A DNA stretch of 64,000 bases from Blastocladiella emersonii ATCC 22665 (Eukaryota; Fungi; Blastocladiomycota), in NCBI GenBank assembly GCA_025594325.1, contig JANHCV010000010.1, forward strand, positions 310,001 to 374,000. Direction: 5' to 3'. A program made the translations under genes and the position numbers. Below, one piece after another: positions 45,887 to 61,000 of the stretch (the first letter of the stretch is position 1; each line of letters opens with the position of its first letter). The notes under the pieces are model-generated. The model was given only the letters and a program-made list of their open reading frames with translations. It was not told the DNA's origin and searched no databases.

Positions 45887-46037
45887 GCCAAGGGCGCGCG
45901 CGCGCGCACGCGCTGTCGCACCGTGGGGTGGGGGCGGGCGAGCGGGCAGGCCGGCCGGCCGGCCGCCCAAGCGTGTTCCGATATGATGATATTGTATATA
46001 TATATACCCGAATGCTATGCGGATGACTCCCCAACTG

Positions 46038-47188: not shown

Positions 47189-48856
47189 ATGGAGCAACTT
47201 AATGCAAACTATTATCTGCACGATCGAGCCACCGTGCACGCGTCGCCCTCATCTGCGTCAGCGCTCTCGCCAAATCTCGATCGCTCGGCGGTCGTCGCCT
47301 CGCGGTCGTCGCCACTTCCAGTCTGCAACTCGCCACCTGCTGGTCTGTGCCTTGATCTTGTTTCTGCTCATGATTTCTTTGGACGAAATGATCGTACTTT
47401 CGTTGATGGATCGCGTTCGCCCTGCTTAACTTCACGCGACCTGCCTGATGGCGACCATTGGTCGGCGCAATCCGTCATCACGCCGCCCCGCGCGATTTGT
47501 TTCTCCCCACGACGGTTCGACCTATTTGACGATGCGGCTGTTCATTTTCCGCAACTTCTCGAGCCATGGAACGTCGCGGACTCCATACCCTCATTTGGTG
47601 AATCCACGGCTCCCACTACGGTTTCCAATACTTCGACCTATACTTCAACTCCAGCTCGCTCAATCAATCACGCGTCACCCATGCCCTTCAGCGCTTCGTC
47701 GGTGCAACTTCCTGGACACAGCGCATTGGGCCACGCTGATGCGTCGACCCAACTCCCGCTTGATCCTGCCGACAATTTCAGCAACGCCGTGCACACGCGA
47801 CCAAATCTCACATTCCTCGTTCTGATTTACATGGCACTTGCTTCGGCGCCCGATCATACTATGGCAGTTGGAGAGCTTTATTTGTGGATCACACAAGCAT
47901 ACCCTTTCTTCCACTCTCTTCCTCGCTCGCATCTCGTGGTTCGATGCTCTCTAACGTGCATCTACTTGCCAGCATCATTTACGCAGACCGCGCTCGTGTA
48001 GCAAAAGCTTTCCAGCAGGCTTTCACACACATCCGAGTTTGTGAGGCTTCCGCCTTCAATTGGCTCGAAGACCGGTCGTTGGACGGCCTCGCAGGACTTT
48101 GTAGACGCGACCCTTGCTAGCGTTGAAGTCGACCCTCATGTCTCCGGTTCTAGCGACTCTCGGGATGACAACCCCTGGTCGCGCGGCGCGAAAGTCGTGC
48201 TTGAGTCACCTGCCTCAAGCGCGCACGAGCTTGAGGAGACTGAAGCGAATTCTGAATCTGTCCCACCAGTCGCATCTGGTCGAACAAGGTCATGGAGCCG
48301 AGTTCCTCTCAAGGTGGTGGTTGATCCTGCAAATGGGACGATTTACCAGCGGCCCGCCCTGACTTACGCCCAGCTTATTTGCAAGGCGCTTGGGTCCACG
48401 CCGGATCACACAATGACGGTGCACCAAATCACGACCTGGGTGACCAGCAACTACCCGTTCTTTTGGCACGTCAAGTTTGCGCAGCTGAGGGTACTTGACT
48501 TTGCTGCACCACCGCCCGTCTGGTCGCACTCACTCTTACGTTCCGTTTTCTTGTAGGAATCCGTCCGTTTACAACTGATGAGGACCGCAGCCTTCTCACC
48601 CGTTCCATCGTCCGAGCGCGCCCCAGTTTGTGGCCAAGATCAGGCCTGGACTTCGGACGAAGCAACTATGGCCAAAATTATTATGAACTCAAACATGAAA
48701 GGACGGCCCAAGCGCGGCACCCGGACAAAGCGACCAGTTCATTCTAACGACGACGAAAATTGTCAAGCCGGCTCGCCGATCGCGTCTGCCCTCGAATCCA
48801 CGCCCAGCAAGGGCCCCGCCGCGCGGGATCCAAAGCGGCGTCGTCGCGAGGAATGA
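47189..48856 (+). CDS. Divergent forkhead protein A (two forkhead domains, 2 introns)
   Basis: RPNLTFLVLIYMALASAPDHTM..LYLWITQAYPFF|QKLSSRLS..GRWT and RPALTYAQLICKALGSTPDHTM..NYPFF|ESVRLQL. LPVCNSPPAG motif. Confidence 0.8.
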
Positions 48857-49410: not shown

Positions 49411-50836
49411 ATGGAGTATTTACCCGGTGCAACAGCTTTTCGACCCGCACACCATGCCCGGGGCGCTGAGCTTCCGCCGCCTCGACCAATTTCGGCGAGA
49501 TACGCTGCCGCCTTCGAACGCGTCGAATCGAAGTCATCTCCGCCCCTACCCGACTGCCACTCGCCGCCTGTCGGTCTACCACCACGTTCGGCGCCCCTCG
49601 GGAGCGCTTCCTCGCGCGAATCACCGTGGTCTTTCTTGGCTACCACTGACCAGTCGCCACATCCGGCCTCGTTCTTTGATCCAAACGAGACTTTCCCGTT
49701 TCACGCGTCGGATTTCTTCAAGACGTATCTCTCGACAGCTTCGAAAGCCCGTTCCTCGCGCGAATCCCGCTCATCTGAGCAGCACTCGGATTCCTCGCTC
49801 TCGCAGCCCTCCCCCTCTCTGCTTCGGCCTCAGCTATGGCGTCAGCTTCTGCAGCACCGTGATTCTGGAGTGTGGTCTGCATCGCGACAGAACTTGCCTA
49901 TTTCCTCGACCCCGGCGGCGTCTGCTCACGCGCCTACTGCACCCGCGCCTTCTGCACCCGCGCCTCCAGCACTCGCTGCACCGGCACTCGCGCCTACTGC
50001 ATCCGCGGCTCGTGCACCCACAGCTCCTCCAGTTCCTCTTGTACTAGTGCCCTCAGCAACGCTTCGACCACCAGCGTCCATGACTTTGACAGCTCAGCTG
50101 CTCGCTGACGACAGCGTTACATATGAGCGACCAATTTTCACCACGAAGCACCTCATCTGCGAGGCCCTTGCGTCGGAACCCAATCGCTCGATGACTATTG
50201 CTGATATCGTCGCTTGGATTGCTCGTCGGTACCCGTACTTTCGCTCCAGTCGCGCGGAATACCATCGCCTTCAGGTCCGTGCGGCTCACAAGCATTCCTC
50301 CTTCCGCGTCGAAAGCTCACCCTCGATTCGTTTAGATGGCCGTGACAAACAGGCTATCGCAAACCCCCGAATTCGTCCGGATCCCGACTGTCGAAGACAA
50401 CGGTCCGGAAATGTGGAAGGCTTCGCAAACGTTTCTCTCTCACGTTTTAAATCGCGGTCGTGACGACGGGCGCGCTGTCGGCACACACACGCTTCCCGCC
50501 CGCCAATTGGATCACGAACCGGCTGCTGTGGTCGAGCCACCTGCCAAGCGCGCCAAGAATGTGCCTTCATCTCCCACGCCGCTGTCGCCACCGCCGGCCT
50601 CCGTCATCAACGGCGAAGAGGAGTGGATCGTTGAGGCCATCCTCGATACGCGTCGCGTGGGTCGCTCCGTCGAGTACTTGGTTAAGTGGTTCGGTTTCAC
50701 CAAGGAGTACGACACGTGGGAGCCATACGTCAACGTCAAGAACCTCGGCAAGGTCGCCGAGTTTCACGCGGCGCACCCGGGCAAGCCGGACCCTCGTCGG
50801 CGCAAGTACAAGGGTAAGCATTGCGCGGGACAGTAG
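49411..50836 (+). CDS. Forkhead + chromodomain fusion protein B
   Basis: RPIFTTKHLICEALASEPNRSMTIADIVAWIARRYPYF. A phase-0 intron (50275-50335) joins it to MAVTNRLS..MWK and to EEEWIVEAILDTRRVGRSVEYLVKWFGFTKEYDTWEP. Confidence 0.85.
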
Positions 50837-52734: not shown

Positions 52735-54821
52735 ATGGAACTTGACGCAATGGACCCGGATCAACCTGCTTTGTTGTGTTCCGGGATGCTGTCGGCGCAA
52801 GGACGAGGCGAGGTCAGTGGTCCTGGTTCGCCGCTTCTCCCGGACTGCGACTCGCCTCCCGCCGGAGTCGCTCGAGCGGAATCACCGCCGACAGGTTTCT
52901 CACTGGATCCGGCGCCAATGCCACATTCGTTTGTTCCCGGTTTGGACCAGGCGAGCTCAAACCCGCTCTCAGACCCAGGCGCTCGCGTTGCCGGCGAGCT
53001 TCCGCAATCGGTCAAGATTTACCTCGAGCGAATCCCTTGCCACGCTCCCATGCCGGTTCTGCCACCTGCGTCATCGGGTATCCGGCCATCTTTGCCAGCG
53101 GTTCCCCCGCCGCACCTACCTCCACCGCCCTCATTCTTCCCGCCACATCACTCGACCGTTTATCTACCGCCACCGCGTGCGCCGTACTTACCGAGCGTTT
53201 GGCGCCCACCAACTCACGGGTTCCCCGCGTCGTACTCGACCTATGTGGCATCGCGCGTCTCAAGCATGTACGCGAACGCCTTCGCATCTTTGCCGAGCAC
53301 CCCGGCCTCATACGCCTTTTCGATGCTGGCTGCAGTCGCGCCACCGCCTTCGCTGCCTCCGTACTGGTCTAGCGTGTCGTTTTCCGTCCCGCCTCCACCG
53401 CAACCCGAAGCAAACCTGCTGCCGCCGACCTCATCGCGTCCTCCGGAATTGCTTGGTCAATCTGCGCGCACCCCGCCCGTCGTCAACAAGGTCAAAAAAC
53501 GGGCTCGTACCCGGCCCCCGGTTGTTAAGGCCAAGCAACCGAGGAGTGTGCAGGCCCGGTCCCCTGTTGAAAAGGGCAAGCAACCGCGGCGCGTGCCGGC
53601 AAATTCCGCGTCGCGGAAAGCTGAACAGTCAATCGTTGATCCTGCGAATGGTGAAACGTACATCCGGCCGCCCCTCACTTTTCGCCAACTTATTTGCCTT
53701 GCTATTCACTCGACTCCCACGTGGGAGATGCGGCTGGCAGATATCTACTAGTACATCATCGACCGCTTTGATTTTTTCCGACTTGCGGATCCCGTTTCTT
53801 GGCAGGTGCGTGCGATGAACGCGGCATTTCCTCCTAGATTTACGCGTGGCAAACAGCGCTAACTTCAAACCACCTCGTCTGTGTAGAATGCCGTCCGACA
53901 CAATCTCTCGGCCAATTCTGGCTTTTCTCGCGTGAAGCGCGTCGCGTCCAAGGACAAGGGAGACTACTGGACCGCCACGAAAGAGTTTTTGGAGCGCGCC
54001 TTCTCGACGTGTCCCGAGTACAATCCGTTTGAGACCTCGCCCACGTCATCCGCACTTGGAGTCGCGGCCGAATCGCCCGAGGGTGGACTTGACGCTGTTT
54101 CGGCCGATGTGGGGCCGCTTGAGCTCCCGCCGCCTAATCGCACGGAGCTCATCTGTGCCGCTCTCGCTTCCACGCCTGATCGCAAAATGACCGCTGCCGA
54201 GATTCGAGCATGGGCTCAGAACGAGTACAAGTACTATCGTCTCAAGGATAGCTCGCGCTTGCAGGTATGTCCGCCTGCAGATTCTTGGCCGCTGGCTCGA
54301 TCTCCCACATTAACCACACGACTTGTTGTATCCAGGGTGCAATCAGCAGCAAACTCAGTAGCCACCAATGCTTCACTTGGGTTGAGCGCGATGCGTCCGT
54401 AGCTTGGCCCAAGGCACGCGGATTCCTGTGGACAGCATCTGACGCCTTCATCGAGGAGACGCTTGCCCGTCGCGACGCCATGTTGGCAGCGTCAGCACGC
54501 CCAAGTCGCCGCACCGCAGCCCCATCAACCAGTATTGCGGCTCAGCCTGTCACGGTGGACGAGGACGAGGATGAGGATGAGGACAACAACGCCGATTCGG
54601 AATCTTCTCTTGCCGACTCTGACTTCGAATCGGACACCCTTGTCGAACTCGTTGCGCGCAAGCGACCGCGGCTCCTTGGTCCAGATTCGGACCGGTCCGA
54701 CGACGAGCCGGCCAAGAGTACGAACATGGACGACTTTGCGCACTGCGACATCCGCGAGAGCAAGGCCCTGAGTCCGGTCGCCCCCTCGCGCGCCGTGGAT
54801 TCGCTGGGTTCGCGGGACTAG
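52735..54821 (+). pseudogene. Forkhead protein D (two domains) with an in-frame TAG at 53749-53751
   Basis: RPPLTFRQLICLAIHSTPTWEMRLADIY*YIIDRFDFF..WQ|NAVRHNLSAN..KGDYWT. Second domain PPPNRTELICAAL..|GAISSKLSSH..FLWT. Confidence 0.8.
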
Positions 54822-58920: not shown

Positions 58921-60575
58921 ATGGAAGAACTTGCTGCATTGCAATGAGCACATCACAATGAAAACAATGTCGAACGCGCCGTCGCCCCTCGAGCCCAAAG
59001 CGCCGCCGTCGCCGGTGCTTCCCGGCTGCGATTCGCCGCCTGCTGGATTTGCGGACCGCGCAGCTCCGCCAGCTAGGCTCGCTCTTGAATGCGTCTCTCT
59101 TGACCTTGTTGTTAATGTGCCAGCTCCAGCGGTGTATCCACACCCGCAATCGCCTCCGCTTGCCGCCGCGACTACCAGCGCCACGCCTGTTGTCGCGCCA
59201 GTGTCGACCTCGCCGCGCTGTAACTCAGCCGGCAGACCTCCCTCGTCATCCGGTCCGTGTGGTGGTGAACGCTGTCATTCGTCCTCGTTCGCGCCGGACG
59301 TGGCTCCACATCTCGTCCCGCCCTACACGTCAGTCTTGCTTCTTCCGCCTCCACCCGTTCAGAATGCTTTCCAAACGCAAATCCCCGCCGCGAATTTTTC
59401 CCCGTACGGGCTTGCATACACCTCTTACTCGTCGTACGCCGCTGCCCCTGCGCTTTCCTCCACCGCAGCGTTGGCTTGGCCGACGTGGGTGCCGCCACCG
59501 CCTGTCCCCTTCGCTGAACTTCAGGGCCATTCGAGGAACTCGAGCACAACACGATTGGCGCCACCGTCGACTCCTCCGCCCGCGGCACTTGTCGGCCTGA
59601 CAGACGGCCAGTCGTACAACCGGCCATCCTTGACGATCAATCAACTGGTCTGCCTTGCGATTGACTCGACGCCCGACAAGCGGATGATGTCGACAGGCAT
59701 CATTGATTGGATCGAGACAGCTTACCCGTACTATCGGCTTTTGTTGTCCGCTGCGTGGCAGGTACGGTGTCAGCTTGATCGCACGAATGCAAGAAATAAG
59801 CTAACTTCGGCGACGCGTGCCAGACCGATGTACGGGAATATCTCGCGAGCCGCCCAGAGTTCCGTCGAGCCTCACGCTACAGCCCCGACGTGCGTGGCCA
59901 CTATTGGACGGTGTCTGAGGACTTTTTGAACCGCACCCTTGCGAGCGTTGCCGACTCCTCGCCGTGTCCTTCTACTTTGGCCTCGAGTCGCCCTACTGTT
60001 TTACAATCGCGCTCTCAGGATGAGCTCGAGCCCGAGCCTGATGCAGCTTCGCCTTCAAGCAACGGTGCGCGTGATTCGGGGACTGACGATGCAGCAGTAC
60101 CAGGCCAGCAAGGGGACGAACGCCCGCCGCACAGCTTTCCCGACTTGATCACTCTTGCCCTTCTATCCTCGCCCGACCTCAAGCTTACGCCCGCCATGAT
60201 TTCCGAGTGGATCACGGACACGTACCCGTGCTTTTGTCACAGCAGCAAGCATGCGTGGGTCAAGGTGCGCGTCCGAACCTCTCTCCACCTTGTTGATCAA
60301 TGACCTCACCCGACCACGTCACGGGCGGCGGATTCTGGACCGTGTCCGATGTGGGCCGCGATTTCATTCGAAAGCGCGGTTTGGACGGCGTAGCAGCAGG
60401 TCTCACGCGCCCATCGAAACGCGCGGCGTCCATCTCCGTATCGAGTGATGAGGAACTCGGCTCGGGCGACGGCGGCAACAAGGACGCGAGCAGTTCAGGG
60501 AACAGCTTGGATGTTGGGACCGCGCGCGCCAAGCGGAAGCGCGCGCGAACGTCGGATTGCGAATTCGATTCTTGA
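58921..60575 (+). CDS. Forkhead protein H (two domains; the second is damaged and the MEEL start is out of frame)
   Basis: RPSLTINQLVCLAIDSTPDKRM..AYPYY..WQ|TDVREYLASR..GHYWT and RPPHSFPDLITLALLSSPDLKL..TYPCF. The wing GGGFWT lies in another frame. Confidence 0.65.
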
Positions 60576-61000
60576 ATGGATGTTGTTGGTTTGTCATGAT
60601 CTTGTCACTCGTCGCTCTGCTCTTCAGATCGCGCCGCCCCGGACCGTGGGCAGGTCACTCATTCGTCTCGCGGCCCGCCGCGCGAGACAGAGACGCGTTC
60701 CGAAAACGCGTGTGGGTGTGAGCCACCGACTCAGCTGCTTCCGCGCGAGCGCGTCGGGCGCGCGCGAGTCGCGCTCTCGAGTCTGGGTCGCGTCAAGGCG
60801 GCGCACAACTGGTCCATGCCGTCGATGGTGTTGAGTCTGAGCCCGCAGAAGGAGCGCGCTCAGGTGCAGGAATCGAAGGCACGCAGCGCAAGCGGCTGTG
60901 GGTTTCCGATTCGGATGTGCGTCTTGATGAGCATAGCTCGCAATTCGATCGAGTAGGGCCTAAATAAAAGTGTATCACACGCCGCCGTCACCGAACCAAA

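Follow-up and report, generated by a model that had tools for sequence, protein, structure and literature searches.

The stretch analyzed here, hereafter the window, comprises 64,000 nucleotides (310001-374000) of contig JANHCV010000010.1 (contig 2) from the blastocladiomycete fungus Blastocladiella emersonii ATCC 22665, the assembly of which totals 32.65 Mb in 21 contigs. Divergent forkhead genes lie in tandem within it, and one member of this array had been described preliminarily as an intact two-exon frame that joins a forkhead domain to a C-terminal chromodomain. Sequence and Pfam analyses bear this out, with scores of 32.4 bits for the forkhead domain and 47.3 bits for the chromodomain, an open exon 2 and an intron at the position conserved among the paralogues. 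The predicted product comprises 454 residues, as summed from the exons (288 + 166), and exon 2 is a single uninterrupted frame of 166 residues covering 50336-50833, followed by TAG. In the Pfam, homology and folding analyses, the spliced protein was considered one exon at a time. The features of the gene are as follows, numbered from the first letter of the window.

49411..50274, forward strand: exon 1, 288 residues, with a Pro/Ala/Ser-rich N-terminal region and the first half of the forkhead domain (ORF, Pfam).
49546..49578, forward strand: family motif LPDCHSPPVGL, residues 46-56, from the translation; the next array member reads LPDCNSPPAGL.
50128..50274, forward strand: N-terminal half of the forkhead domain, profile positions 2-45, ending in ...YHRLQ at the splice donor (Pfam, paralogues).
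50275..50335, forward strand: intron of 61 nt, phase 0, GTCCGT...CTCAC...TTTAG, after the W/L-Q/K codon and before helix 3 (array-conserved position).
50336..50443, forward strand: C-terminal half of the forkhead domain (helix 3 and wing), MAVTNRLSQTPEFVRIP...GPEMWKASQTF, with M..TN instead of N..RH (alignment with paralogue exons 2).
50444..50575, forward strand: native linker of about 44-45 residues, predicted disordered (pLDDT 52-65), GC3 0.60, no retroelement similarity.
50540-50560, forward strand: basic patch PAKRAKN inside the linker (translation).
50576..50825, forward strand: retroelement-derived segment with the PPP..NG.EEW motif, the chromodomain, the FH..HP.KPDPRR tail and a purine-rich end (blastn, tblastn, DNA alignment, GC3).
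50624..50767, forward strand: chromodomain proper, exon 2 residues 97-144 (Pfam, HP1alpha alignment, predicted fold).
50624-50626, 50687-50689 and 50696-50698, forward strand: cage residues W97, W118 and F121 (HP1alpha alignment).
50834..50836, forward strand: stop codon TAG, about 5 codons past the position of the retroelement pol stop (sequence).

The forkhead half of the protein is split by the intron, and its two parts are documented differently. In exon 1, Pfam reports the Forkhead family (PF00250) over residues 240-281, corresponding to profile positions 2-44, with 32.4 bits (cut-off 27), and a scan of the whole genome returns a Forkhead match at the same site with 35 bits. The Pfam search of exon 2 alone did not return any Forkhead match in the helix 3/wing stretch. 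The first residues of exon 2 can be aligned with helix 3 and the wing of the paralogues, W27 being invariant, and in the paralogue at 53887 the corresponding exon 2 start matches Forkhead profile positions 49-85. Helix 3 of the fusion reads M-A-V-T-N-R-L-S, as compared with N-S-I-R-H-N-L-S in canonical forkheads; the base-contacting N-x-x-R-H is thus absent, and within the array it is kept (as N-A-V-R-H) only by the member at 53887. This replacement of N-S-I-R-H by M-A-V-T-N makes specific DNA reading by the fusion forkhead doubtful, and the proposal that this half would provide sequence recognition turns out to be the weakest part of the initial idea. The module may instead bind DNA or nucleosomes non-specifically, possess a novel specificity, or be inert. 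Non-specific binding of DNA or nucleosomes is carried out by winged helices such as linker histones. With canonical forkhead (FOX) factors, the fusion shares a winged-helix N-terminal half scoring above the Pfam cut-off and a C-terminal half that aligns with a paralogue passing it. It differs from them by the lack of the helix 3 N..RH contacts, by the presence of a chromodomain, and by its location in a species-restricted tandem array without relatives detectable by word search.

The forkhead array genes look like a birth-and-death family, since a TAG codon lies inside one forkhead unit and helix 3 is hypervariable. Their third-position GC content (GC3) ranges from 0.58 to 0.72 between positions 46000 and 60000, in a block of 57-60% GC, as compared with 0.77 and 0.83 for two other host frames (L045 and L056, respectively), and in composition the array seems to stand apart from typical genes of the genome. 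The array also seems to include several double-forkhead genes (47798-48856, 53665-54820 and 59621-60600), in which the exon completing one forkhead continues in the same frame into the N-terminal half of a second one that possesses its own intron at the same position. It is possible that the chromodomain of the fusion replaced the second forkhead of such a gene; the linkers do not align. Further forkhead arrays are found elsewhere in the assembly, with at least 20 Pfam matches on contig 4 (G000:C4:772000-834300) and three more at G000:C2:401600-402240, and no chromodomain match lies beside either of these arrays. In total, the genome returns at least 43 chromodomain and at least 44 forkhead matches, both counts being lower bounds, and only the fusion gene brings the two domains close together, in agreement with the earlier remark that no other array member carries a chromodomain.

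Regarding the C-terminal half of the protein, Pfam assigns exon 2 residues 97-144 to the Chromo family (PF00385) with 47.3 bits against a cut-off of 25.1 (E-value 2e-12). The alignment with human HP1alpha (CBX5) is gap-free and places W97, W118 and F121 at the positions of the CBX5 cage residues Y, W and F, so that the aromatic cage is complete, as had been proposed. The domain also carries the announced tail of FHAAHPGKP style, FHAAHPGKPDPRR. The third cage position is Phe or Tyr in the fusion, in most foreign chromovirus ends and in the other host copies, while it is Cys in the two resident element families A and B (KWHGC); a third resident family (L048, L050) has Tyr at this position. The AlphaFold model of exon 2 alone displays strands followed by a helix, with a pLDDT of 93-97 over residues ~100-150. 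Foldseek analysis of this model returns H3K9me3-bound chromodomains as best matches, Rhino (4quf, rmsd 1.1 Å) and CBX1 (6d07, 1.2 Å); across these two structures and the H3K9me2-bound HP1 (1kna, TM 0.89), the target TM-scores are 0.86-0.89 and the rmsd values 1.1-1.4 Å. A further match, 6mha, is by its title the dHP1 Y24W variant bound to an H3K9me3 peptide, which indicates that H3K9me3 can still be bound when Trp occupies the first cage position.

The fusion chromodomain therefore resembles the HP1/CBX readers (CBX5, CBX1, Drosophila HP1 and Rhino) by its gap-free alignment, its three cage aromatics and a predicted fold within 1.1-1.4 Å of theirs. It differs from them by the lack of a chromo-shadow domain and of a hinge, by its retroelement origin and by its chromovirus-type tail. 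Profile searches of the genome return one Pre-SET and one chromo-shadow match, making an H3K9-methyl/HP1 system plausible in this fungus. Work attributed to Gao et al. in 2008 reportedly found that chromovirus chromodomains with three cage aromatics bind methylated H3K9 and steer integration to heterochromatin. Judging from the cage and the modelled fold, we lean towards a fusion chromodomain that would read H3K9 methylation, if the protein is made. PMC2864245 gives no information on cage residues.

The genome harbors Ty3/Gypsy chromoviruses with which the captured domain can be compared. The element at L033:2351-7641 (G000:C2:1217850-1223140) is 5.3 kb long and contains an intact frame of 1286 residues encoding, in this order, protease, reverse transcriptase, RNase H, integrase (H2C2, rve and Tf2-type SH3 domains) and Chromo. 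Its two LTRs, of 174 nt each, show 100% identity to one another, and the pol stop codon abuts the 3' LTR. The 1286-residue frame occurs in at least 15 copies genome-wide; together with the identical LTRs, this copy number indicates that the element has recently been active. When the last 74 residues of the fusion are searched against the genome, the best matches after the fusion itself are pol frames of 1286-1435 residues, matched at their C-termini with 61-65% amino acid identity over 71-73 of the 74 residues (tblastn). These pol ends are its closest relatives among all the matches examined, in this genome or elsewhere. At the DNA level, the fusion matches families A (e.g. L033) and B (e.g. 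L036) with 72-74% identity over 205-234 nt (blastn). This homology is bounded at ~50576 and ~50800-50825, and thus amounts to the last ~75 codons of a chromovirus pol, or ~250 bp. It starts ~12 codons 5' of the chromodomain, with LSPPPASVINGEEEW in the fusion and LPPPTPYAVNGHEEW in the elements, and the shared tail AEFHA..P.KPDPRR leads into the purine-rich end of pol. The same motifs are general in fungal chromoviruses: an alignment of 39 chromodomain matches from the full HMMER search with two resident elements exhibits PPPPP.(I/V)(D/N)GEEEW on the N-terminal side of the domain and FH..HP.(K/A)P on its C-terminal side. The reading of the tail as typical of fungal chromoviruses is accordingly confirmed, FH..HP.KP being common to the pol ends of many fungi.

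On either side of 50576-50825, comparisons of the flanks reveal no integrase or LTR similarity. The homology being confined to this segment, it represents a captured fragment rather than an element copy. Codon composition provides independent support for a chimera. GC3 is 0.83 in 50576-50833, as compared with 0.54-0.62 in the native parts of the gene, 0.54 in the flanks and 0.91-0.95 in the element pol frames, and the step falls at the homology boundary. The intermediate value suggests that the captured piece has drifted only partly towards the local GC3. Just 5' of the fusion ATG, the segment 49300-49385 displays a gapped likeness of ~70% to the initial ~95 nt of the LTR of family B, with a local score of 29-37 as compared with 18 +/- 2.7 for dinucleotide shuffles; this likeness, which neither blastn nor nhmmer reports in searches of the whole window, could reflect a decayed solo-LTR promoter or chance.

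Taken from these sequence comparisons, the derivation of the chromodomain from a chromovirus pol end is well supported, as the preliminary description had suggested, and it is very probable that the fusion gene is an in-frame chimera of retroelement origin. The captured segment resembles the integrase C-termini of chromoviruses (MAGGY, Tf1-like and Tcn1-like) by the domain itself, the PPP..(D/N)GEEEW flank, the FH..HP.KP tail and its position at the end of the frame. In contrast with these integrases, it is accompanied by no integrase, reverse transcriptase or LTR and is joined to a forkhead gene, and its third cage residue is Phe instead of the Cys of the resident families A and B.

Divergence from the resident elements was estimated by the Nei-Gojobori method over 63 codons. 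Between the fusion and family A, dN is 0.25 and dS 0.88 (dN/dS 0.29); between the fusion and family B, dN is 0.26 and dS 0.70 (dN/dS 0.38); and between families A and B, dN is 0.13 and dS 0.23 (dN/dS 0.57). A three-point split assigns dN 0.19 and dS 0.68 to the side of the fusion. All seven invariant or near-invariant columns (E96, V99, I102, Y114, W118, W128 and E129) are kept in the fusion, the frame of which is preserved across two in-frame indels relative to the elements. To judge from these substitution estimates, the segment shows apparent purifying selection over most of its divergence, perhaps accrued inside an element family that is now gone. The highest identity to any resident element is 65%, which points either to an old capture or to the loss of the donor family. 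The chromodomain phylogeny that had been called for was built with 29 chromodomains of this genome; in the maximum likelihood tree, the fusion sits on a long branch that emerges from a polytomy, and hence the donor family cannot be named from this tree.

The best overall explanation, which we consider probable, is a chimeric host gene composed of a forkhead paralogue and a chromovirus pol end. In this scheme, a lineage-specific and fast-diverging forkhead paralogue would have gained, at the 3' end of its coding sequence, ~250 bp of the 3' end of a chromovirus pol. The acquired piece would encode the integrase C-terminal chromodomain and its tail, nearly to the pol stop, and the product would then comprise, from N- to C-terminus, a disordered region, a divergent winged helix, a basic linker and an HP1-type chromodomain.

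The rival that survives best, rather unlikely in our view, is an accidental chimera devoid of any selected function: an element would have landed in a decaying array member and been mostly deleted, the frame staying open by luck or youth. It draws on the birth-and-death traits of the array (the TAG in one unit and the hypervariable helix 3), on the low GC3 of the native gene parts and on the lack of public protein matches, no orthologue of the fusion gene having been found in the word and full HMMER protein searches; moreover, the dN/dS signal may have arisen during the element phase. Against this rival stand a dS of about 0.7-0.9 to every resident element, no closer element being present in the genome, and 86 codons that are still open despite this divergence and in which both indels are in frame. 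The retention of all invariant and near-invariant positions and of the three cage aromatics, where families A and B have Cys, and a GC3 that has moved only partly towards the local level also argue against an accident. The chances that the fusion is made and kept as a functional protein appear evenly balanced.

A second rival takes the gene model to be erroneous: the forkhead gene would end or be spliced before the chromodomain, and the captured piece would be untranslated or belong to another transcript. An alternative acceptor at 50353, which would define a 78-nt intron, indeed yields a frame of 36 residues without chromodomain, and the fusion is absent from public protein matches. This acceptor differs, however, from the one conserved across the paralogues. 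Eight of the 10 forkhead units of the window possess a phase-0 GT donor after the W/L-Q/K codon and, 61-85 nt further on, an acceptor with the ending ..tag; the 61-nt intron of the fusion, with its ..tag acceptor, is this paralogue-conserved intron. The only splice that the model requires therefore falls inside the forkhead domain, at the family's own intron position. Since the C-terminal half of the forkhead, the linker and the chromodomain share the exon 2 frame, the fusion does not depend on any splice between the two domains. With no stop from helix 3 to the chromodomain, any transcript completing the forkhead domain continues into the chromodomain, and we hold a wrong gene model to be improbable.

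Several other genes of this genome end in a chromodomain. Coiled-coil host genes with an element-type chromodomain and tail are found on contigs 4 and 7 (L045, L047, L049, L051-L055 and L058), among which L045, on contig 4, corresponds to P0121 and to the public protein KAI9159263.1, the C-terminus of which is identical to the frame read on that contig. In the coiled-coil array of contig 7 (L051-L054 and L058; G000:C7:463100-472400), the central cage Trp is lost (LVLRSGY, LVQRQGY, etc.), making canonical methyl-lysine reading by these domains unlikely, and the FHA.NP.KPDPR tail is kept. A third rival, in which the fusion would have received its chromodomain from an HP1-like or a coiled-coil host gene by exon shuffling, finds some support in the same-style tail that ends L045, L047 and the contig 7 array, but is very improbable given that the coiled-coil copies are just 41-57% identical to the fusion, lack 2-3 residues in a loop that is complete in the fusion and the elements, and are preceded by an acidic run instead of the PPP..NG common to the fusion and the elements, and that the HP1-like gene (L056) is 44% identical over 32 residues and devoid of the tail. 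A host HP1 origin of the chromodomain was rejected in view of the low identity and the flanking motifs. The same differences in loop length, flank and identity indicate that the forkhead capture was separate from the coiled-coil captures.

The fusion thus joins a class of proteins that is already represented among fungi. A kingdom-wide screen for fungal host-transposon fusions lists more than 1000 candidates with Chromo domains, and forkhead is unmentioned in its main text and in those of its supplements that were examined (PMC10799480). Such fusions and the resident coiled-coil genes (P0121, KAI9159263.1) resemble the present gene in that a retroelement-type chromodomain lies in frame with a host nuclear protein, at its extreme C-terminus and after a basic patch. 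What sets the present gene apart from both groups is its partner, a forkhead winged helix. Host capture of chromovirus chromodomains is therefore a known class that is recurrent in this genome, and the forkhead partner is new.

The architecture had been noted as unfamiliar, and the protein and literature searches agree: a protein with a forkhead and a chromodomain was found neither among the matches listed nor in the literature covered. No match was returned by word searches that used exon 1, its forkhead part alone or exon 1 of the neighboring paralogue; the search with the whole of exon 1 was probably swamped by low-complexity words. A full HMMER search of exon 2 against 1.84 billion representatives returned 4310 matches. 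Among those listed (the best 150 of the 4310), only the chromodomain is matched, from query residue 45 onward, leaving the forkhead half uncovered, and there is no self-match. Twenty matches from this search (best 150 of 4310 listed) were checked, and none possesses a forkhead; a distant and independent forkhead-chromodomain fusion could be present among the unlisted matches. The ESM Atlas returned generic chromodomain clusters only, all below 0.9. The top exon 2 matches (P0001-P0010), from other organisms, are proteins with 3-7 tandem chromodomains, and additional domains in the matches include a C2H2 zinc finger (P0002, P0003 and P0005), an ADP-ribosyltransferase-like domain (P0004) and trypsin (P0015). 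Since a protein of the same assembly, KAI9159263.1, is present in the collection and the fusion model has no match there, the forkhead array may be unannotated among public proteins.

If the chimeric host gene, our preferred explanation, is expressed as modelled, its chromodomain would dock on H3K9me2/3 nucleosomes, in the chromatin that the parent-type elements presumably target. The forkhead module, lacking the canonical base-reading residues, would more likely act as a general or altered-specificity binder of DNA or nucleosomes. In that case the protein would hold heterochromatin by both of its modules and might compete with the resident chromoviruses or track them. A broader proposal, which we regard as unlikely, is that B. 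emersonii repeatedly adds the chromodomains of still-active chromoviruses to its nuclear proteins, a forkhead in this case and coiled-coil rods in others, and that the forkhead fusion is a working host reader turned on the parasite. If this were true, the fusion would sit on the H3K9-methylated chromatin sought by the integrases and could block or steer integration, or nucleate silencing.

New proteins are known to arise when host genes borrow domains from transposons, and it is usually the DNA-binding part that the transposon supplies, as in SETMAR and the CENP-B-like proteins. Here the roles are reversed, the transposon supplying the chromatin reader and the host the DNA-binding fold. The donor-type family is still present in the genome with identical-LTR copies, and the junction, at which codon composition changes abruptly, can be placed within a few codons. 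Should the protein not be made, the locus offers a clean snapshot of the raw-material stage of domain capture. If it is made, it would be a simple and testable case of the origin of a reader-plus-binder chromatin protein in an early-diverging fungus, and may show how a host counters or exploits the targeting of chromoviruses to heterochromatin.
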